Origin: Lytechinus pictus
Taxonomy: Eukaryota
Assembly: GCF_037042905.1 (NCBI RefSeq)
Contig: NC_087246.1
Coordinates: 12,834,001-12,898,000 of the forward strand
DNA: 64,000 bases
Reading direction: 5' to 3'
Part shown: piece after piece, positions 42,001 to 57,000 of the stretch
Layout of the letters: every line of letters begins with the position of its first letter
How positions within the stretch are numbered: the first letter of the stretch is position 1
Made by a program: the position numbers and the translations under genes
The notes under the pieces: generated by a model
Told to the model about the DNA's origin: nothing
Databases searched by the model: none
What the model saw: only the letters and a program-made list of their open reading frames with translations

Positions 42001-45000
42001 AAAAGTTTTACTCTAAGATAGACTCATAAGCATCAATAGCGCTGCTGACACTTGTTTCATTGGAATACAGAAATGCATAAAATGTAACTGGAATCTGATA
42101 GAATTTGGTCAAATTCTTGAGTGCCAGCACAATGGACACAGGCCAATTAAAAATGGGCTTTTATGAGGAGCTTACTTGCGTGGTGTTGACATCAAAGCGA
42201 GCATTGAGAATGGGAAAGGATTCTTGAATAACAAGCTGCAACAGAAGACCATTTAGTTCTGCAAATAACCAATGAAAACAAAATAAAGGAATATTTGCAT
42301 GGAACTATGATGATGGAATTGTGTGAAATGTATGTAAAATGAACATTCCTCAAATCTACACTCGGTAAAATAGATTCCAAGAGACAAGGTATGATAAATA
42401 ATCTGAAAGAAAAAATGTCCATGTCCAAAACATCTCATCGCATACTCACACCAAATCAAATGGAAATTAGACCAACTGGTTCTGGAACAAATAGCTATTA
42501 TACATAGTTTGGGAAATAATTATAATGTAAGGCCACTTTCCTCCTAAGCTCCTATATGGTATGGTCTAATAAATTATTTCTCAAGTTGTATAGAGTAAAC
42601 AATATAGTTATCATATGTCAACAAGGCCATAGGCTATTAAAGAGATATATAATTTTCATGAGAGAAATTCCACATCTGTGAATACAAATTTTACGGAATT
42701 TGACAAGTAGCAAGCATGATGTGTTATATGATGGTAAACTTCTTGCAATGCTCAACAAGTAATTGAGTATATGAATATAAAAAAGGCCCAAGTCCATAGG
42801 AGGTAATTTCAAGAAAATAAAAAAAAACGGATATTTTTTTAATTTGGGCAATTAAAGTATATTTGGCCAAATGATATCAGAGAACATCATGAAACAAATT
42901 TAAGTGTACATGAACATTTATATTCACGTTACTTGCGGGCGGGGAATTTTTTCTGGTGGATTGGGTCATTTTTAGAATCATTCTTACATTCATATACATG
43001 GTAGACTTCTGTAGTAAGTAGTAGAAGTAATGAGAGCGGGCACTATGATATGAATGTAAGAAAAGCCCAAGTCCTGGACTTGGGCTTTTTTTACACTCAT
43101 ACCAGATTTTCCTCCTTTATTTAAGGCATTTCTGAGATGACTTCAGATTTATCATTTATACACAAGATGAGTCATTTTATAAGGAACAATTTCCCATATT
43201 TAACTCAATTTCGCCAAAATTGGACTTGGGCCGTTTTTATATTCAGATACTCAATTCATATTAAGATGATCCATCAGACTTGATGTGCAAACATTATGAC
43301 ATCACAATGGCAGTCCAAATCATAAGCAATGCAGGTGTCACACCAACTCATGCTTGTATCATTTCTATAACTTAAAACATCTGCCGTTTCATCTTATGGG
43401 ATAAACATGGGTACAGATATTGTTGCAATATACAATGGTCATTATGTTTTATAACCATATAATGAATTCGTCTCTGTTTTCACGAAGTGACGGATACAGG
43501 GAAAATCCCATTATTTTTCAATTTCGAGTTATTTGCATTTTTAGACATCTATGACTAAAAAGTTTCAGATCACAAAAATGTCTAATTACGTTGCTATGAC
43601 GACATGACATTCAACAAAATACCGGGTAAAAGGATTTCTTGTTTTCACGAAGTGACGGATATGTACGCACATTCAGCCGTCACTTCGTGGAAATCAACGA
43701 ATGCAGTTGTCGCTGATGTTTTTTTTCACGAAACGACGGATGAGGCCTGGCGCGAAGTCAGTGACAATTCGTCACTTCGTGAAAACCGTCGCCTGACTTT
43801 CGGTGCAAATGATTTGGTTACGAAGTGGCGGGAACGAGTTTCGAACAGCTTAGAATGGTCAGAGATCGTGAAATGGTGAGTTTTTTTTAATATAAGAAAG
43901 TAAAGAAATGTGATGCACCCTTTTAAGTCTTTCTGATTATTTTTAATGACCTTTTCAACCTTTGATTAACGTCTCTGTGCGCAAAAACCTGAATATAATA
44001 CAGTCGCTCTATACATTGTCCCATGTACTTATTTTTTTGTAAGTGAGATTGAGAATGGGGTGAAGGAGACTTCTGCCGTGTCACAAAAAAGAAACACCGT
44101 AACTTATTTTACACTAACAGGAATAAGAACATTTTCAGACACAGATCACGGCTAAAAGTGGATTGAGTTGGGGATTTAGATCTATGACTAATACAGATGA
44201 AATTATATTTCTAAAATAGGCTATTTAGAGTGTCAGTCTTAAAATTAAAAGGCAGGCTCTCGTAATTTGTTCCTCTCACTCAGTCACAGCTCGGACTCTT
44301 CATTCTCTCTCTGCCACAGGAGTGTCACTCTCAAAAAGAGTAGAACTATTAAGAATGAATGATAAGAAGCCCCCCCCCCAAAAAAAAAACAGTCAACATC
44401 TTTAATGTTAGGCCTACTGTAGTGTAACTCTAAAGTATAATTTAATGTGAGGGCCATTTAAAATGTCCAAGCCAGGAGGATGTGCACTAACTCATGAAAA
44501 TTTAGTTTGTTGGCGTTGCTTTTCCCCAGCCTCCTCTCTCTGTTACGAATCTTAAATCAGTGTAGGTGTTGGACGCAAGAGTAAGATTTGTTTAGCCTCA
44601 TTTGCTGGTGACTGGTGTTAGTAAATCAATAACTGTAGAGTCTATGGGAGGAAGAGGCTTGTGTCGGCACAACCAACAGTGACATTCATTTGAAATCGAC
44701 GAGCCTATTTTTTTTACATAGGGCTAGCACCAGGAGCTTCCTATATATTTGTGTTTTATGGGGGGGGGGGGGTCTCCTGTTACGATCCATAGATGATTTA
44801 GAGTGTGATTCAAAATTGAATTAAGAACAATGCATTTTCGCAAGAAAAAAAAAAACAATGGTGTGAAGAAAGAGGTTCGATGCATGCACTTGGGAGGGGG
44901 GTAGTTTGAATGCTGGATTTTTAAGGGCATGTGAACAGAAATACATGAAATAAACATTTTCTCATTTTTTCACTGATTATATCATTGTAGAATGAATGGT

Positions 45001-48000
45001 GGAGTTGTATGTCATATTCAAATTTTTATGACAACCCTTGACTAATCACAAATAATTAAGTTCATTAATCTAGATTGAAAAATCATCGAATTGTTATTAG
45101 AGATTTTGACTTTGGATTATATATTATAAAGGTCTTAAAATTGTGTAATCACTTCAAAGAGCCGTGCAGGCAAGCACCTTATTAGGTGATAAACATGTAA
45201 TATTTTACATAAAATAGAAGAATGTTTTTGAAAAAAAAGTGTACCTCAGGTTTGGTGATTATGATGAAGGTCTTCTTGTGCTTCCATTTCTTTTTCAGAT
45301 ACAGTAGATAAAATTAGCATTTCCATCATATTTCTGCTATTGGTACACAATGCCGCTGGCCAGAGAAAAATGCAGGTAAGAGTTTTCATCATGCAATAAT
45401 TCCACACATTATGACAACCTGTTGGTGTTCTGCCAACCATTGATTCTCCTTTTTCTTCCCATAATTACAGACTGCCGTTGGCATATTATCATATTAGTTT
45501 TTGCTTTTCAAGTGCCCAAATGAAAATTGCCAGTAGAGCTACAAAACCTTTGTGGCTAAAACAAGCTTTAACAAAGCCTCCTTTGCTGAAACTCCTGCTT
45601 AACCACTTGACTGCGTAGCACGTAATATTACGTGCTGGGCGAGCGTACGATCTGTGCGAGGCACGTAATATTACGTGCTTGACCTATCTTCTGTTTGAGG
45701 CGTCAGCACCGCGCTGTTAAAGCCCCTACAATGAAAACAGCGTGTGTATATCAAATTTCTGACTATGGACGCCAGATGGCGCCATTCCAAAAAAGTTATC
45801 AAAACTTTTGCAGTGATTTATAAATGTTTGTATTCACTCTGCCATAGTGAAAGTGTACGACGCTCAGTTCAAAATGGCGACTCGCAGTGGAGAAGTGAAT
45901 CAGAAGGATTTTGAAGAAACTTTTGACAATAGGAGTGATAAATTTAGTGAAAGATCTGGGTCAGAAGGGGAGGATGATTTTATTAATGGATGTTGGAAAT
46001 AGTGATGAGGAAAGTGATGTGATTATTTATAATTTTTTTCCCCCAAGTTGCTGTCGGTTGTAGTCCCAAATAGATCTAACTTGTTAGTCCCATTCAGTAG
46101 CACCAGGGGGGTCAGTGCGCAGTACAGCCTATAGCAGTCAAGTGGTTAAGATACTTGACCTGCTACATTTTGTACATGTATTCTGACTAACTTCTACAAT
46201 TACTATCAATAGTTCATCTGTTACAATAATATTGAATTGTACAGTAACAAGAGAGTATAAATTTAGAGTGTTATCTTTTAGCAGCTAACTTGGACCTGAA
46301 AATGTTTCTGATTTTGCAGGAATGAAATAGGCCTATGTTTAAATGGAATATTTGTTGTAAAAATATGCATGAAATATACTTTTGATATGACAAGCACCAT
46401 ACTCACTGTATGGGCAGGATTTAGTTTGATGGAGTAATTTGAAATATTGAGTCTGCTTTCCAATCTATTGACATGCAAATTTTAACATTGGAAAGCCCCC
46501 CCCCCCTCCCCGAAATAATTTTTTTTTTCAATCATTCTTCTAACTCAGATTGGATCCAGACACTGACATGCAAGTAAGATGGGTAATCGATGGTTCTCTG
46601 AACACCGTCAGAGCTGGGGATGTCACCTGGCATGGCGCCCTAAAAGTTGGTATGATGGTTACGATGGATTGGAAAGGCGTGCCCTGGTATGGGATTGTTC
46701 AGGAAGTTTACCTGGACTCATCTCCTGAGGACTGCGACTCAGACGACGAACCACTGTCTGTGCTTTTGGATAAGTCGAAAGGTATTTCATTCCCTTGTTA
46801 ACGACACTAACTTCAGAACTTATGTTAAGTCCCCTGTGAATTATTTGTGCACTTGATTGATTTGTGCATTTGTGAAATTTCACAGGATAAAAATCCACCA
46901 ATACTTTCGAGCAACAATTTTTTTTAATTTTAAATCCAAAACCATCAGATCAATTTTCGCCAGAGCAAATGTCATGGAGCCATATGTACAGCATAGAATA
47001 TTTCATACCAATTCAGCAACATATTTTAGATAGAGTTATTGCTGCTCAAAATACAAATGAATTGACAATGTCATATGGCCTTTACAGGAGTTTGGGATAA
47101 TCTTCATTGCTTTAATGTTTCGGTTTCTTAGTAAATTAAGTGGAGAATCCTATCATGCAGTATCCTCGATGGTACCCAGTAGGGCTGCCTTTATGCTATG
47201 GGGAAGAGGGGGCAGGGCCTTGCAACTATTGATTGCCATATTCTACCTAAATTTAATATATATTCACCTGTGGTCACCTGACTGCCCCCGTCAGTAACCA
47301 TGGTAGGCCCTTGGGTCCTATAAGGTTCAGCATCTATTTGCATTAAATCCTTAATAAAAAGTGTCAGTGCTACAATGATTACAAGAATTTCTTATAAAGT
47401 TGGTACTTGGACAAATGTTTGAAACATGTTTACAAGGTTCAGTTGAACACACTGTAAGTAAGAAGTGCGTATGTACCCACAGTATAGCAGACTGTGTTGT
47501 GTTTATTGGCTTAAAATACAGCGGTGCAGAAAACATTCCACTTTTTTGTACAATGAGCTAAAAGTAAAAAAAAAATTATAGAACCACTGTGTGCATCTTC
47601 CGTATTTTCATCCCAAATTAGTATTAATATTTTACATGTTTCATCTCTTAAATATATTTTTTCATCAGGAGCTCACAATGTTAGCCAATGCCTTTTAATA
47701 CCACATAACTTTTTATACTCTCAAAACTATGCTCCTTATAATAACTGTTTGGCTCCACATAAATATGACCGTTCTGTGTTTCTGTACATGTGATTAAAAG
47801 TAAACAAATTTTCTCTTTTCTCTAGGCTCCACAAGTGGGAAGTGCACTTTGCAAAGTGAACCACCAGTTCATCCAGCTCAATGTGACAACTTTTTTTGTC
47901 AGAAGGAGGTGTGGGCAGCATGTCATAGATGCCTGTGTTTCTTATGTTTTGAGCATTTTTCTTTAAGTGATGATTGTCTTTCCCACAATGTAGCATTTAA

Positions 48001-51000
48001 TTCTAATAATGTAAATGTTGAACAACTTGGAATTCTAACAGAAACAGGGTCCAAGTATAAAGAGCAGGAAGAGCAAGAGGTAAGACAGAGAATCCCTGGA
48101 GCCATGGTGCAACCTCATGAAGTTCACAGCAGCATGACTCCTCCGGACAACGATGGAATGTCACCCTTGCCTCAGTCAAGTCTCACCAGTACTCAAGAGG
48201 CTGCTGTTCAAGAGATTTCGAAGAGTCCATCTGCAGCCTCTGGTAATGTTGATACCCTGAATCCGAGAGAATGCGTGGGAAGCATTCCAGAAGACATGGC
48301 TCAACCAAGCCTTCCATCTCTGTCTTCTGTTTGTGAAAGTCATCCTTCCTCATCAAGCAGAGAAACCCTAGAAAACTCAAGAGGTAATCCACCCTTACTT
48401 CATTCCAAAGAATGTGAAGGCCAGAGCATTCCAGTAAATGTGTCTGAATCAGCAAACCAACCTCAGGATGTAGATATGGATTGCAGCGTGATAACTCTTC
48501 CCGATGAAATGCTTCAAGTGGATCCAACACCTGTGTTGGAAAGTTGCACCCAAGCTCAACCGGAGACATTTGTTGTAGATGGCTTGCCTGCAGTCCCGAT
48601 TCCAGAAACACCTACAGAATGTAAGAGTAGGAACCTACTCGTGAAAGAGTAACGGAACCGTGGGCAGTGCTACTTCACTGAAAAAAGTAAGAAGTTTGTG
48701 CCCTCTCGCAGACAATCAAGCTTTGATTGTGATTGCTTGAAATGTGATGGAAGAGGCCTTTCTTGTCAGAAGTTTAGCCAAGAAGACAGAATTGCAGTAC
48801 GGAATGCATATTTTGACCTCGGCAATTTACAGGAACAGAGGCATTGGATTGCAAGACATACAGACGTAAAAGGAGAACTTGGGAGGAAGAATCAACGGCT
48901 AAAATATTTCCTGCCAGCTCCACAAGACCAGTTCGCAAGATTTAATGTTTGCCAGATGTTTCTATCGACTCTTGGAATTACAGAGGCAAGTAAGGACTGC
49001 CACCAAGAAGAGGCTTACATGTGGCATCTTACAAGAAGACAGACGTGGGGGCAGACAATCTAAGGAGAAAGATGCCATGCTGCGAGAAGGTGTTGAAGCC
49101 CATATCAAGCGGTTTCCATGTATGGAGTCTCACTATTGCAGGTCAAAGAGTAAGTGCCAGAACCTTTCTGCAGATTTGAATTTGACCATGATGTATGAAA
49201 TGTACAAGCAGCAGCAGGAAGGTATTCTAGCATCATACTCCTTATACAGGCAAGTATTTCAAGACCTGAAGCTCAAGTTTCATAAGCCCAAGAAAGACAC
49301 CTGTAGTCTTTGCGAGACTTATCACCGTGGGACCTCAATGGAAAGGGAAAAAACAAAGATCGGTATCTCAAGCACACAGCTCAAAAGGAGAAAGTAAGAC
49401 AGCTGAAAGAAAGTGCAAAGGGAAGATCAAAAGCAGATGGTACATATGTATCGGCTGTGTTCGATCTTCAGCAAGTTATCTACTTGCCTAAATCAGCAAG
49501 ATCTGAGCTATTTTACAAGAGGCGTCTGAGCAACTTCAACTTCACTATTTTTGAACTTTCTTCCCAGTTTGCCTGTGTTATCTATCTCATGAAGGTATCA
49601 CAAGACGAGGTGCTTGTGAAGTGGCTTCCTACGTCTATAACTACTTGCAAACCCTTGACGAGAAGGGTGTCAAAGAGGTGGAACTATTTGCTGATGGCTG
49701 TGTTGGCCAAAACAAAAACAGCATCATCGCAAGTATGATGCAGTTTTTTGTGGAGCACTCATCCTCTGTCAGAGTTGTCACAATGAACTACTTTGTGACA
49801 AACCATGGACAGTCAGAGGGGGATTCAGTTCATAGTGTCATACAACGTTGTATGGACCGTGTAACTGAAATCATGATCCCAGGACAGTTAGCCAGCATCA
49901 TTCGCATGGCAAGAGTCCAACCTCGCCCATACTTTGTAAATGAAATAACATCAGAGGATATCAGGGACTGGAAGATGCTCGGTCAACAGAGTGGCATTCT
50001 TCGTGTTCGTAAATCACAAGGTGGTCAATGCATGGACTGGACTCAGATCATGGCCCTCCAGTTCACCAAGGACTCTCCAAAGGATATCAAGTTCAAGATG
50101 TCTCATTGTGATGATGTGTTTGATGCCATCACAGTGGGAGGAATCCGCCGAAATGAGGAACATGAAAGAGAACTGCCAGATCCCTTGTATAAGAATGGGC
50201 CACCAAAGGTACCGCAAGCAAAGTACCTTGATCTAGAATCATTGTGTACGGGGAATACTCCTGCTGTTTGGCATCCTGACTACAAACAATTCTACAAAAT
50301 GCTACCCCATTGAATGCAACACATATAGAAATGGCAATTGTGAGTGAGCATCGGGATTATCATCATCATTGCCGTCGTAGTCGTTTTTCATCATGATTAT
50401 CTACATTACTACAACTTATTTTCTTTCATTTTTTTGAATTCATATTTAAATTATTTGTCATGCATTCTGCTCATTTTATGTTTTAAATAATCTTAAGCAA
50501 TCCGTCCTCAGCAAGTGTTTTTATGTTTAATGTATATATCTGATTTATCATCAAAATATTTTTAGTATATTTGTGTTACCATATTGTATTATTATGCCGA
50601 AGAAAAATAAATGAATATAATCAAAGCATGTAATCTTCATTTACTTTGTTACATGTCGGGGTCCAAATGTTTTTTTGTTTCATTTTATCTCATTCTTGTT
50701 TCTTGGTTTCATTTATATTGACTTTTTATTTGGTTTCCTCTAATAATTTTTTTTTCTTTCAGGCAGTCGTGATCAGGATTTATTAGATCACAACACTGAC
50801 TTCTCTGATATCGATCTGTGCGGCACAAAATTACTATTAAGTAAACCTTTCACCATCAAAATTCTTAGTTTTGATTTTCTTATGATTTTGGCTTAGATAT
50901 AAGTCTAGTTTTTATTTTGATTTGATTTTCATTTTTGGTTTCATTTTTCTTACATTTTATTTCAGAGCCATCTATATCAAGAAGTGCCTCAACCATTATT

Positions 51001-54000
51001 GCGGGATGAGAAACTTGAGGAACCTCATTTGTTGTAGTGATCGACGTAATGATTTCGAGAAAGGAAGACTAACTTACAACAGGTCTAATATCCAGGGCCT
51101 TTTTACTGTAATAGAGAACATGTACTCTTACTGGACCATATGACTTCCACATTCTAAATTATCCTTTTTGCAGGACTAAGGTGTATTTGGTTTCATGGAA
51201 TGCTGTACAAAGATACTCATTACTGCAACTCTTGTTTTAGATATATTATTCATATATTGATGAATTTAATTAGTCAATAACTTGAGGATAATTTGATAAT
51301 GAATTAAATGACTTTTCATTAGTACTTCGATTATTGTATTCTATACCTTGTATACTACCGTTTCTGATTCTAATTAAAACATAATTGGTTTGTAGATGAT
51401 TCTGTATGATACAAAATTATATTGATTGAAAACTATAATAATAATTGATGGAAAATGATCCTTTTACATAAATTGGTTAGTTATTAATTGTGTATTGAAT
51501 CATTAGCATGTCTCCTTTAGAAGAGATAAGTGTTTTGCACTGCTAGGTTTCATAGTCTTTGAGACTGTAAAAAGATGAAATAACCTTTAATGTCAGCGGA
51601 ATTTCTGCTGACATTCTTCTCACTAAAGATGCCCAAGAGTGATGATTGAAATAGGCAACGGTGATTATTTTACTTAAATTTCATTTGTTATAAAAGATAT
51701 ACACTCATTTTACAAATGTAAATATCTATGTCAATATTGAATTTAAGAGAATAAAGCGGTTGTGATAATTCGCCAACGGCCAGTATACTTAAAATTACAT
51801 GATTTATTATAACATCTTCATGTAAACATTTCACTTTACATAAAAGTATTGTTCACAATATCATTTTGTTATTCGAGATATGAATTGTGACCTTTCAATT
51901 TTAATGAATGTTACATTGGTGCCCGAAAGTTCTGAGAAGGCAACAGATTGGAGGGGCATGCGATTGTGTGTGATCAAAACTTTTCTGTACCACTGGAAGC
52001 TGATTATTTCAGAATGTTGCAATGTAAAATTTTAATTTATGTATATTTATTTCTTGAATTTGATACTTTTTTGTCAACAAATCTGTATAGCAAAATGCTG
52101 CATTCACATGATACGATTGCCTCTAATCTTAATCAGGATGAAATGTATACTTGTTAGATATTTTCAAGTATTCTACGTAGGATATACAATTACTGAAATA
52201 ATCATATTCAGTTGATGTATTCCAGATTATTCAATTTACATGTAAATTTCACAATACAGCATTGATTATTATTGAGCTAATATTTCAAATGAATTTTCAA
52301 TTTATTGTATTCCAATGTATTTGCCACTAGCTATGCTTGTATCATATGTTATTGAATCCAAAGTGTTCTTAATATATTTCAATTATTATGTAGAGTTTAC
52401 TGAGATGTAGTTGATATCTTTAATGAATTTCTTAAGCATGATTTTTATATGTACAAAGAATCTGATCTTTTTGTCTGTTTTCCACCTCATGTTCTGTTTC
52501 CAAATATTATAAATTAAAAGTGTTCTTCCACATTTAATGTACATTGTAGAGTATTGTTATAATGCTAATATTTCAAATGAAGTTTAAATTTATTGTATTC
52601 CAATGTATTTGCCACTAACTATGCTTGTATCATATGTTATTGAATCCAAAGTGTTCTTAATATATTTCAATTATTATGTAGAGTTTACTGGGATGTAGTT
52701 GATATCTTTAATGAATTTCTTAAGCATGATTTTTTATATGTACAAAGAATCTGATCTTTTTGTCTGTTTTCCACCTCATGTTCTGTTTCCAAATATAAAT
52801 TAAGTGTTCTTCCACATTTATTTTCATCATGTGCATTCTTGAGTATTGTTTATGTACCCAGTATTTTCAATAATTTTCCCAAAAGTCACAACTCTGTAAT
52901 TTTTCATAAAGGAGACATTTCAAAGTGATGTTTTTTCAATTTCTTATGAATTCCAAATATAATTTTTTTCTTTTCAGAATTGATCATATCAAAATGCAAT
53001 AACATTTTTTTTTCATTCTACCCGAATGAAGCCCAGGAACACAGCAGAATGCATGACCATTGTGATTTTAAGGTAAACTTGAGTAGGAGGGGGTTAGGTT
53101 GGGGAGAGGTAGGTGGACGGGGGGTGGAAGGGGAGAGAGAGGAAGAGGATAGAGAGAGGGGGAGGGGTGGGAGGAGAGGGGAAGTGGGTGGTGAGAAAAA
53201 GGGAAGGGTGGAAGGAGAAAGAGAAGGGAAGTGAGTGGAGGGGGAGGGGTAGAAGGAGAAGGGAAGTGGGTGGAGAGAAAGGGGGAGGGGTGGAAGGAGA
53301 GAGAGGGGAAGTGGGTGGAGGGGGAGGGGGTGGAAGGGGAGAGGATTGGGTGGAGGGAGGGGAAGTGGGTGGAGAGAGTGGGAAAGGGGCGGAGAGAGAA
53401 GATTGTAATTTGAAATTTAATTTAATTTTGACAGCTGCTTCAGCAGATCTCTGCTTCGTTCTTTAAAATAATTAATCATCAAGGAATAATACTAAATAGT
53501 CAATTCAGCTTTGACAGAGAATACCTATAGATGGGATTTAAGAAATCTCAATTGTTTATATATATATATTTTTTTTTTTTTGGGGGGGGGCAGTGAGGCA
53601 AGTTAGTCAAAACAAACTGACGCTTGTTGGTGATGTTACTTATTCAATTCCAACGAAGTAAGTGTTCTCGAACGGTATAATTCTACTTTCTCAAACATAA
53701 AATTACAAGGAAGACAATGTGTTACATGTTGACATTATATTCATTTAATCCATAGCCTGATTGACAGATGAGTAGAGATTTCAGTGTCCTCTAAAACGTG
53801 GAGATAAAAAGAAAGTGAAAAAAATGGCCTGATTGACATATATATGAATAGAGATTTCCATATTTCAGTGTCCTCTAAAACGTAGGAGATAAAAAGAAAG
53901 TAATCCCCGGCCCCGTGCGTCTCCACGGTATTCATTGTGAAAATAAAATTATATTTGTACCAAAAGGGGAAAATGTAGGGCTAATTGATCTCACATTTGG

Positions 54001-57000
54001 AATTATTTCGTCTGCAATAGCAATTAAATCAGTTATTTATGATATCTATAGCCTACTTATAGAATTACAACCAAGACTATGCGTGGGACTGAGGCAAAGC
54101 TTCTACCGTCACTTCGTAAAAATAAATTTGCAGCGCGTCCTGAATTTAGGGTTTTCACGAAGTGACGGTTATACGCGCGGAGCACCATCCGTCACTTCGT
54201 GAAAATAAATCTAAGCGCGTCCCGTAAAATATTTTTTTCACAAAAATATGGTTCTGCTTACAGCTCATTATCTTCTTATATTTAAAGAAGATGCAAATGA
54301 TTGGACTTGAACATTGCCTAGAATATGCCCTAAACGATAATATGAAATTTATCCACCCTGCATACTTGAAAGACGTTGAGATTGAGGTCTAAACCTTTGA
54401 AAGCGATTTACTAAAAACTAACTTTTTAAAAGTTGCGCGCTCATCCGTCACTTCGTGAAATAAGGGACGAATTGGCAATGGCTAGAAGATCAAAACTTGA
54501 CCAACAAGAAACTTTCCACCCAATGGTGTGTCTTCTGTAAAGCGATATGGAGAATTAAAAAAAAATGTTGGGATCAATTATACAAGGTGGGATTAAATTA
54601 ATGTTTATTCAATTACATTCTATGCTATCTAGGAATAAAGACTGTCTGTTACAAATACATATATAATAAAAGTGGCATTTCTTCTAACCTTCATATTGTC
54701 CAACTGTAAGTTCACCTCCTGTGTCTGCTTCAGATAACCATTCAGAGATGGTTGTTAGTGCCTCTCTCTGCAGATCTTCATCCATATACCTATGTACAGG
54801 AATAAATTATTAGAAGAAAGCTGTGTTCTGGTAATTTTCATCATGATTTCAGCATTTCAAAAGTTAAGATGATAATGGTCAGTTAAATGATAGCGTGCCA
54901 TATTTATAAAAAATTCCCTCTTTTGTGACAAACTGCGAGTACCACAACAAAATTATGGAACCATTTCTATTAAAAAACATCTATTCCTGTTACATGCCTT
55001 AAGCCCTCAATAGAATTATAATAAAAGATACATACTTTCATACAAATAAGCAAAACCCGACTTCAAATACAATCTGCCAACAAATAAATTCTTAATGGCA
55101 ATGTTTTTTTCTTGTTATAAAAGTGGCACCACAATATAATTTATTCAGTAAGAACTAGTTATGCAAATATAACGATAAAAATAATTAGTTACAATAGGAA
55201 TTACCAAATTATGACCATCTTTACCTTGCAAGTTGAACAGGTTTGGTTTGTGCTTGTTTTCTCAGTTCATCTTCCTGATCTCTTGTAAGGTAACTCAGAC
55301 CTTCATAGAAAAGCTGACAATATGAGAATGAAAAGAACACTAGAACAAAGGGAATTTTCCTCTACAATTCTTCTCTTATCCAAGGAACTCCCTCTCCCAT
55401 CATCTCTTAGTGAAATGACCATTTGGAGCACTTCACTCAACACTCTCATTTTCCATCAGACACTCAAATGCTAACTTTCTCAGGAGCAGTCTGCTCTTCT
55501 GATTTTTTTTAAAGAGAACATTCAATAGTTGGCAAGTTTTCACTTACATGTAGAATATTTCAACTACTTTGTCAGCTGGAATGAAAATGGGTACATGCAT
55601 TGGTGTTAAATCAACATATTTAAACACAACTGATATTGGTGTGAGCAAAATTGGTTTAGAAGCAGCTAAAAATATCAGACATAAAATCAACCTAGTGAGT
55701 GGGTATCGTTCAAGGAACCACTCACGTGTAGATCCAATGTGATGACAATTTATGCACCCACAAACATGTGCAGTTAAGTTTTTTTTTAGTATCATGTGCA
55801 GTTAAGTGTATTTTTAGTATGGAGCTACCCTGGGAATGATCATAGCTTGCACAGACAGTGACGGTTGAAATGTGATCATTTGAAATATCTTATTAAAATG
55901 TCATCTAAAAATGTGGGTGGAATATAATAAGATCTCTTGAGCGATATCCATAGTTTAAGATTGACAATAAGAGACTAGCAATTTTGGAATAGATTTCATC
56001 CAGATTAACATTTAGCAAACACTACTTGATATTAAACTCTAAAGAGATATCCTCGGTGAAATGTTAAAATCTTGTATCTCAAAATTCAAACATATATATA
56101 TAATAGGGTAGTTATGTAAAAGCTTGATTTTAGAGTAATGACATAAATAACAACCTTTTTTAATTTCTAGATCAATGGTTTTAACACGCAGTGATGATAT
56201 GGAACCATACAAATGCTGTGGATTATTATTAATATTCCCCAAGTTGGTATTTGAAACAAAAAATATTTTACCAACAGTCTCAGCACTTTTTCACAAAACA
56301 ATGAACCCATTGACTACTGTATTCCGAAATTTCCAAAGGCTAATTACAGGATCTTCCAGTTCTAGAAGGCAACAAGTTGACAGCGACTTGTAGTTAAGAA
56401 TATGTGCATATTACTTAGCATGTAATATGCAGTAGCACCTGTCACCTGAACATGATGTGGCCAATTTGATGATGTACTATAGCATTGAATGTAGGGATTT
56501 AGGCATGAATTATAGTTCTACTGGAATCTTTGTAAAAAATAAATCATAGAGCTGCCAAATGGGATATTCATCAATTCAGGAAGAATTCACTGAGGACTTT
56601 GGGAAGTCCACTTTCAATCACACAAAATACAATGTAAATCAGTATGTTGATTATTTCTGGTTATTCAATTCAAAATATTGTCAACTTTTCAGAGTCTTTC
56701 TGACAACCAGGGAGATTTGGCAGCTCTGAATTACAAACACTATATTATGTTATATTTGTACATTGTGCCCTCACCTTATTAAAGTTGAAGTTATGTTTGC
56801 AAAGGAATTCGATACTTGATGCCTGAAAATCAGAAAAATCACACAAAAACATGGTCAGCATTAATAATGAAGTGTCATTTCATCTTTAAATAAACCTTTG
56901 CTTTATATTACACCAACAAGTGAAAATATTAAAAGGATACTATCATGATGACTTAACTCCATCTTGCTCTAAAGGTTAACTATTTTCCAAGATGTTTGTA

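Follow-up and report, generated by a model that had tools for sequence, protein, structure and literature searches.

A predicted Tudor-like barrel and a Cys/His finger are joined by splicing at the N-terminus of a putative Sola1 transposase gene in Lytechinus pictus

What is a short, tryptophan-rich exon doing ahead of a degenerate transposase? The question is raised by a 64,000-nucleotide (nt) stretch of the Lytechinus pictus genome (contig NC_087246.1 of assembly GCF_037042905.1, positions 12,834,001 to 12,898,000 of the forward strand), here called the window and numbered from its first letter, which carries a DNA transposon that we place tentatively in Sola1. A preliminary description of the window had proposed that an exon at 46549 to 46781 is spliced to an open reading frame (ORF) encoding a Cys/His finger, a linker, and a transposase core, and had likened the product of the exon to Tudor and SH3-like barrels. 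We find that the exon is truly coding and belongs to the transposon’s own transposase gene and that splicing fuses its product, called the module below, to the finger and the transposase. As modeled, the protein would begin with a short N-terminus and continue through a permuted barrel of ~50 amino acids (aa), an acidic stretch, a P-L-[AS]-x-L motif, and the finger to a disordered, fast-evolving linker and the transposase. We consider it fairly probable that the gene has this architecture and that the barrel and the finger tether the transposase to chromatin.

The exon, its donor, the acceptor before 47826, and the in-frame join between them all lie where the preliminary description had placed them. 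The exon holds one open frame up to the donor AAG/GTATTT at 46781/46782. The acceptor at 47825/47826 consists of a long polypyrimidine tract followed by ctag/GC, and the codon split by the intron (G+GC, encoding Gly) is in frame with the ORF of the downstream exon, which starts at 47826. Beyond this acceptor, we likewise find the Cys/His pattern and a linker rich in S, P, and E, which measures 212 aa against a claimed ~220 aa. The ORF that carries them had been called long, whereas in this copy it is closed by a TAA codon at 48650 to 48652; sister contig L001 reads through the equivalent codon.

The start of translation had been put at ATG 46568, and here RNA evidence leads to a different gene model. 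We compared positions 44450 to 50400 with raw reads from three RNA sequencing (RNA-seq) runs of the species and with a contig set, reading about a quarter (∼25%) of each run. In run X4, six reads with six different starts join 45375 to 46549 with GT..AG borders, from which it follows that the acceptor at 46549 is real and that this is an internal exon. The exon before it encodes MPLAREKC and two bases of a split Arg codon, with an in-frame stop ahead of it at 45305, and L001 has a matching 26-nt ATG-to-donor exon that encodes MPQSREKS and ends at the donor CAG/GTGAGA. Because the RNA joint makes the exon at 46549 internal, and because an in-frame ATG with a counterpart in L001 lies upstream of it, the true start is probably ATG 45350 rather than ATG 46568. 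Coordinates of all features are collected in Table 1.

Table 1. Features of the transposon and its transposase gene in the window
Feature	Position	Strand	Basis or remark
Left element end: AATT (candidate 4-bp target-site duplication, 43465 to 43468), then terminal inverted repeat	43465 to 43495	+	31-nt pair, 90% complementary
Upstream exon, coding end: ATG 45350, donor CAG/GTAAGA after 45375	45350 to 45375	+	RNA joint and frame
Intron 1, 1173 nt	45376 to 46548	+	RNA joint and depth
Module exon, internal, phase 2 in and phase 1 out; encodes the whole N-terminal module	46549 to 46781	+	
Tudor-like four-strand barrel (predicted)	46565 to 46711	+	AF2, Foldseek, VIA, conservation
Acidic Ser/Asp/Glu stretch, then motif [DE]-x-P-L-[AS]-x-[LY] (EPLSVL here)	46712 to 46765	+	Conservation
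Intron 2, 1044 nt, GT..AG; unalignable with L001 except for the last ~120 nt	46782 to 47825	+	
Cys/His finger, putatively two-zinc, eight conserved ligands	47882 to 47986	+	Invariant Cys/Phe/Leu columns
S/P/E-rich low-complexity linker, 212 aa, closed by in-frame TAA (48650 to 48652)	48014 to 48652	+	
DUF7869-type DDE transposase core, degenerate	48653 to 50313	+	Pfam PF25273, E 2e-5
Right terminal inverted repeat, AATT at 54470 to 54473	54443 to 54473	-	

Does the exon recur with the same partners elsewhere? An exhaustive phmmer search with the module exon peptide returned 16 homologues (cluster representatives), all of them short ORFs, which cover the whole exon at 36 to 68% identity. In contigs L001, L003, L004, and L011, the module is followed on the same strand by a finger and then by a DUF7869 transposase, and L002 shows the same order as far as the contig end. 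In L001, a single 614-aa ORF runs from the finger through the linker into the beginning of the core, and the transposase of L004 is an intact 545-aa protein. In L011, the Cys/His finger occurs four times in tandem between the module and the transposase (L011:5104-6607). The joined layout was also examined on natural proteins: two NCBI gene models of Strongylocentrotus purpuratus, P0014 and P0016, carry the module and the finger in one protein, and because both are gene models, this contiguity reflects predicted splicing and not intronless DNA.

The splice sites and the reading frame are conserved along with the order of the parts. The position of donor and acceptor and their phase (phase 1) are kept in three of four copies, namely, the window, L001, and L003, and the copies that share splice sites are only ~45 to 68% identical in protein. 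Between the window and L001, the exons are 71 to 77% identical, the intron is unalignable, and the module and the finger have ratios of nonsynonymous to synonymous substitutions (dN/dS) of 0.136 and 0.156, respectively. That 16 independent homologues span the exon and that sister copies keep the splice position and phase is more than chance would produce. Judged from these comparisons, the module and the finger are conserved under purifying selection, and the expectation that other copies would keep the exon, its splice sites, and a dN/dS below 1 is borne out. The preliminary description had also spoken of a transposase that gains a module; the spliced N-terminal module is confirmed, whereas the suggestion of a recent gain is misleading, as the module was already present in the ancestor of a clade known from a sea urchin and from marine metagenomes and is not a local acquisition.

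The linker behaves differently from the module and the finger. It evolves by internal duplication, with a ~110-aa repeat in L001 (3064 to 3738) and a long tandem array in L003 (4950 to 6100), while the two domains stay conserved in both contigs. In the window, its composition is 13.7% S, 11.3% P, and 10.8% E. The last ~120 nt of intron 2 (47707 to 47825) can be aligned with L001:2600-2722, within a block of 77% identity, and the remainder of the intron cannot; this end may be a conserved branch-point, a regulatory region, or an alternative exon. L003 also holds, 3 kb upstream of its module exon, a 204-aa ORF (376 to 990) whose basic start, MPRSKR, recalls the N-terminus of P0014, MPRPKKSK.

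These comparisons bear on the simplest alternative, namely, that the ORF of the exon is fortuitous or that the exon belongs to a host gene unrelated to the transposase. One could point to the dead state of the transposase copy and to the missing junction read from this exon to the finger exon in this organism (the depth of coverage is given below). Against it stand the 16 full-exon homologues, the linkage to finger and transposase that recurs in contigs of five further lineages, one of which is partial, and in two gene models from sea urchin, the dN/dS of 0.14, and the position of the exon inside the terminal repeats of the element. This alternative was ruled out on these grounds and is effectively refuted.

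The repeats in question measure 27 to 31 nt and bound an element of ~11 kb. Many copies of the motif CACGAAGTGACGG lie near both of its ends, reaching to ~43790 on the left and beginning at ~54100 on the right. A 4-bp AWWT duplication has been described as a hallmark of Sola1 (PMC3845634, citing Bao et al. 2009), and AATT stands beside the terminal inverted repeats at both ends, although the duplication was judged on one element and AATT, being palindromic, could equally belong to the repeat. In its terminal inverted repeats with a 4-bp AWWT (AATT) duplication, the element is like Sola1 DNA transposons, and it also shares with them a DDE-type transposase that lacks an older Pfam family. Membership in Sola1 is therefore suggested by the terminal repeats and the AATT beside them, and the protein itself is placed in Pfam DUF7869 only.

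What fold might the module adopt? The predicted barrel takes up residues 6 to 54 of the exon peptide (46550 to 46780), with strands at 6 to 11, 17 to 21, 36 to 41, and 44 to 54. Four of its residues are conserved (W11, N18, W41, and W46); the three tryptophans are present in 16 to 17 of the 17 sequences, and Y47 is present in 6. In the motif of the tail, P68 is kept in 16 of the 17 and L69 in all. AlphaFold2 (AF2) run on the window exon with its 16 homologues gave a predicted local distance difference test (pLDDT) score of 88 to 94 over residues 1 to 50, and in P0016 the barrel reached 88 to 98; the models contain four strands plus a 3-10 turn. The acidic tail is predicted to be disordered (pLDDT 59 to 70). 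All structures discussed here are predictions, and it is on these models that we find the features of a Tudor fold, i.e., ~50 to 60 aa in four to five antiparallel strands that form a bent barrel.

Structural comparison of both models with VIA placed the ARID4B Tudor first (7dm4; Z 6.7 for the window model, matched to chain range 35 to 96, and Z 8.0 for the P0016 model), followed by RBBP1 (2mam; Z 5.8 and 7.1), KDM4C (2xdp; Z 5.5 and 6.8; root mean square deviation 2.2 to 2.3 over 52 residues), and the SH3-like barrels of UBE2O (Z 4.6 and 5.5). The remaining rows were unrelated, with Z at most 3.5 and 4.3. Foldseek ranked the Tudors of ARID4B, RBBP1, and KDM4A/B/C at the top, with probabilities of 0.96 to 1.0, and an Atlas shape search led to RBB1NT/Tudor clusters. 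An Atlas feature search with the module exon returned unnamed clusters only, all below 0.9, and Pfam gave the module only signals below threshold (hints of Spin-Ssty, Agenet, and Hva1 type, and an IntS14 barrel at 0.037). The barrel of Tudor/SH3 type that had been suspected from the tryptophan pattern is thus predicted for two family members, with its best matches among the ARID4B, RBBP1, and KDM4 Tudors.

The matched ranges, 35 to 96 of ARID4B and 905 to 963 of KDM4C, coincide with the second lobes (HTD-2) of hybrid double Tudor domains, which comprise residues 35 to 86 in ARID4B (PMC8038949) and 909 to 960 in KDM4 (PMC5114558). On the models, the module would form a barrel by itself with its strands in the order b3-b4-b1'-b2', a circular permutation of the canonical Tudor, like HTD-2. 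It is not a hybrid double Tudor: its four strands all correspond to HTD-2, with ~15 aa before them and acidic, disordered sequence after them. The HTD-2 of KDM4A/B/C (JMJD2) has the same strand order, and KDM4C 905 to 963 is 19 to 23% identical to model residues 4 to 56. Unlike that lobe, the module stands alone, with no HTD-1 strands before or after it, and is part of a transposase, not a demethylase; any methyl-lysine binding by it is putative. The double Tudor of ARID4A/ARID4B (RBBP1; Pfam RBB1NT) was the best structural match in every search (Z 6.7 to 8.0; Foldseek probability 1.0). The module differs from it in being acidic, in its conserved tryptophans, and in having no HTD-1, whereas ARID4 is without an aromatic box and contacts DNA through HTD-1 and a basic tail.

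The finger that follows in the protein has the pattern C-x4-C-x7-C-x2-C-x4-C-x2-H-x6-C-x2-H, with ligands C19, C24, C32, C35, C40, H43, C50, and H53 (numbered from window position 47828). It was modeled within P0016 at pLDDT 66 to 81, and the only fold match to its range in this model was the zf-HIT domain of yeast Hit1 (2n95; Z 3.4, covering 42 of its 49 residues). On this model, the finger weakly resembles zf-HIT and may be of the two-zinc cross-brace type (HIT/MYND-like). With zf-HIT domains (yeast Hit1 and the ZNHIT family), it shares eight Cys/His ligands at a spacing compatible with two interleaved zinc sites. It is unlike them in its first ligand pair, which is C-x4-C and not C-x2-C, and in its last, C-x2-H.

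How would such a module and finger serve a transposase? In KDM4A, HTD-2 holds trimethyl-lysine with F932, W967, and Y973 (PMC5114558), and W11, W41, and W46/Y47 of the module fall at or next to these positions, a mapping made by range arithmetic and not from coordinates. We infer from the models that the module may read methylated histones and may target the transposase to chromatin. In this view, the finger and the acidic barrel, whose three tryptophans are conserved, would together tether the transposase to a basic, probably methylated, histone tail or to a chromatin-bound host factor, and this tether would bias the choice of integration site or hold the enzyme on chromatin, like the chromodomains of Ty3/gypsy integrases. 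A basic ligand is favored over DNA because both the barrel (mean charge, -3) and the tail (mean charge, -5.8) are acidic.

The charge also bears on a different use of the fold, in which the barrel would be a DNA-binding domain like the ARID4A/B Tudor and would help to bind the element ends or the target DNA. The two top structural matches, ARID4B and RBBP1, do bind double-stranded DNA (PMC8038949), yet ARID4 does so mainly via HTD-1 and a basic RGR tail (PMC8038949), neither of which is present in the module. The net-acidic barrel is moreover followed by a strongly acidic tail, and the transposase has a Cys-rich, helix-rich region of its own just before the core. We regard DNA binding by the barrel as improbable.

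The preliminary description had raised a further use of a Tudor-type fold, as a mimic of the Tudor proteins of the piRNA pathway that would bind the methyl-arginine of PIWI proteins and blunt silencing. Apart from the fold type itself, the models disfavor this view. PIWI-binding Tudors are extended Tudors of ~180 aa, in which the core is embedded in a staphylococcal nuclease (SN)-like (OB) fold, whereas the module is a bare four-strand barrel of ~50 to 55 aa with no folded flanks. Its nearest folds are KDM4 and ARID4 lobes, with no TDRD or SND1 domain among the top matches listed. Such mimicry therefore seems very improbable.

Several observations weigh against a chromatin tether and the gene model behind it. 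None of the RNA reads joins 46781 to 47826, but depth on 47833 to 50400 was close to zero in the portion of the runs read, and the missing joint therefore neither supports nor refutes the junction. The donor and acceptor phases of L002 disagree. The Z scores of 5.5 to 8 are modest for a small barrel, and the SH3-like barrels of UBE2O come next at 4.6 to 5.5. No Pfam family of Tudor type (TUDOR, Tudor_2, RBB1NT, Agenet, etc.) matched any of the 17 members at E ≤ 1, a result that would be explained by the circular permutation of the module, and profile searches with the module and the finger against Protein Data Bank (PDB) sequences found nothing significant. The finger has no Pfam zf-HIT or MYND match, only a weak one to Transp_Tc5_C at E 0.065. 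The mapping onto the KDM4A cage is indirect, and Y973 may correspond to the variable residue 47. Finally, the ARID4 Tudors that head the match lists bind DNA and do so without an aromatic cage (PMC8038949).

Part of the same evidence would fit a reading in which the module and the finger are real parts of the transposase that act as a regulatory or assembly device and not as chromatin readers. The acidic tail might mimic DNA and restrain the DNA-binding region, the barrel and the finger might mediate oligomerization, or the two might recruit a host partner outside chromatin, e.g., an import or chaperone factor. Proteins with zf-HIT domains typically act in assembly complexes, and the sole fold match of the finger is such a protein-interaction module. 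The acidic, Ser-rich tail with PL[AS]xL looks like a short linear interaction motif, and the variable putative cage residue and the lack of a Tudor sequence profile match point the same way. On the other side, the fold comparisons consistently put chromatin Tudor lobes nearest, and three near-invariant tryptophans lie at or near cage positions. We hold such a regulatory or assembly role outside chromatin to be rather unlikely and prefer tethering to chromatin.

Of the known means by which a mobile element can choose its landing site, the clearest is a reader domain. To our knowledge, nearly all of those described so far are either chromodomains or PHD fingers, and most are carried by retrotransposon integrases. 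Fusions of transposable element (TE) enzymes to Chromo and PHD readers are documented (10.1101/2021.11.30.470311), and a 2025 paper described a C-terminal Tudor in Gypsy-10_Ec32 of the brown alga Ectocarpus as the first Tudor on any TE (PMC12477816). The architecture proposed here follows the same logic as Ty3/gypsy chromodomains, the PHD/Chromo fusions, and the Gypsy-10_Ec32 Tudor, i.e., an enzyme joined to a small Royal-family or zinc reader that is thought to be an integration tether. The known fusions are mostly on retrotransposon integrases and C-terminal. Here, the putative reader is N-terminal and permuted, belongs to an animal cut-and-paste DNA transposon, is encoded on its own exon, and is paired with a finger of apparent two-zinc type. 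Our literature search found no paper linking Sola1 with a Tudor domain on the transposase and no description of a Tudor- or HIT-like N-terminus, in line with the earlier remark that this architecture had not been described for Sola1.

If the tether is real, a Tudor-like barrel and a finger on an animal DNA transposase would carry the reader strategy over to an element class and a domain type that are both new to it. A bolder form of the proposal, which we think possible but doubtful, is that the stand-alone permuted barrel, as an equivalent of the KDM4 lobe that binds methyl-lysine, is the first Tudor-type reader of histone marks on a cut-and-paste DNA transposase, with its three tryptophans reading a specific methylated histone tail and steering Sola1-type integration in marine animals, while the HIT-like finger and the PL[AS]xL motif recruit a second chromatin factor. 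With a 55-aa barrel and three conserved tryptophans, the family would offer a small system in which cut-and-paste integration directed by chromatin can be tested. It would also provide a naturally occurring Tudor that is permuted and has a single lobe, and the barrel could be related, as a free-living form, to the half-domains that gave rise to hybrid double Tudors. Surveys based on Pfam are blind to the module and the finger because neither matches a profile. For genome annotation, the gene structure shows that short ORFs upstream of Sola1/DUF7869 transposases are part of the transposase gene.

The transposase of the window copy is dead. Besides the TAA at 48650, its core contains three frame changes, at ~48983, at ~49352, and at 49570 to 49588, and because sister copies stay open at each of these places, we call the copy a pseudogene. 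The possibility that the frame changes are short introns was rejected, as the sister copies read straight through them. When the module, the finger, and every piece of the transposase were searched against Pfam, DUF7869 was the only family returned apart from noise below threshold. The intact transposase of L004 scored 37.7 bits (E 2e-9), and the piece from the window scored 24.7 bits, just below the gathering cutoff of 26 bits. Atlas relatives of the core are DUF7869 clusters of mollusks, arthropods, and rotifers.

The X1 contigs represent another copy, ~96% identical to that in the window. They show a one-base length difference in a T-run of the finger (47891 to 47897) and a further length difference at ~49568, beside the third frame change of the window. 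From these differences in length, at least one further, differently damaged copy is present in the species.

Two other signals in the RNA data come from repeats. An unrelated expressed repeat is nested in intron 1 (~45445 to 46240), matched by reads at 90 to 95% identity in all RNA runs and by the X1 contigs, and it includes a palindromic pair, AGCACGTAATATTACGTGCT, at 45612 to 45679. In intron 2, ~40 nt (46942 to 46983) are covered at a depth of 24 to 42 per strand in all three RNA runs. The reads have unrelated loose ends on both sides and fixed differences (T>G at 46950, T>G at 46956, and G>A at 46979), and the signal is due to a short fragment of a repeat that lies elsewhere and is highly expressed; it does not reflect expression of the locus itself. 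In the 3' part of the element, a degenerate G/A-rich tandem array (53113 to 53466) is the source of spurious ORFs rich in Gly, Glu, and Arg.

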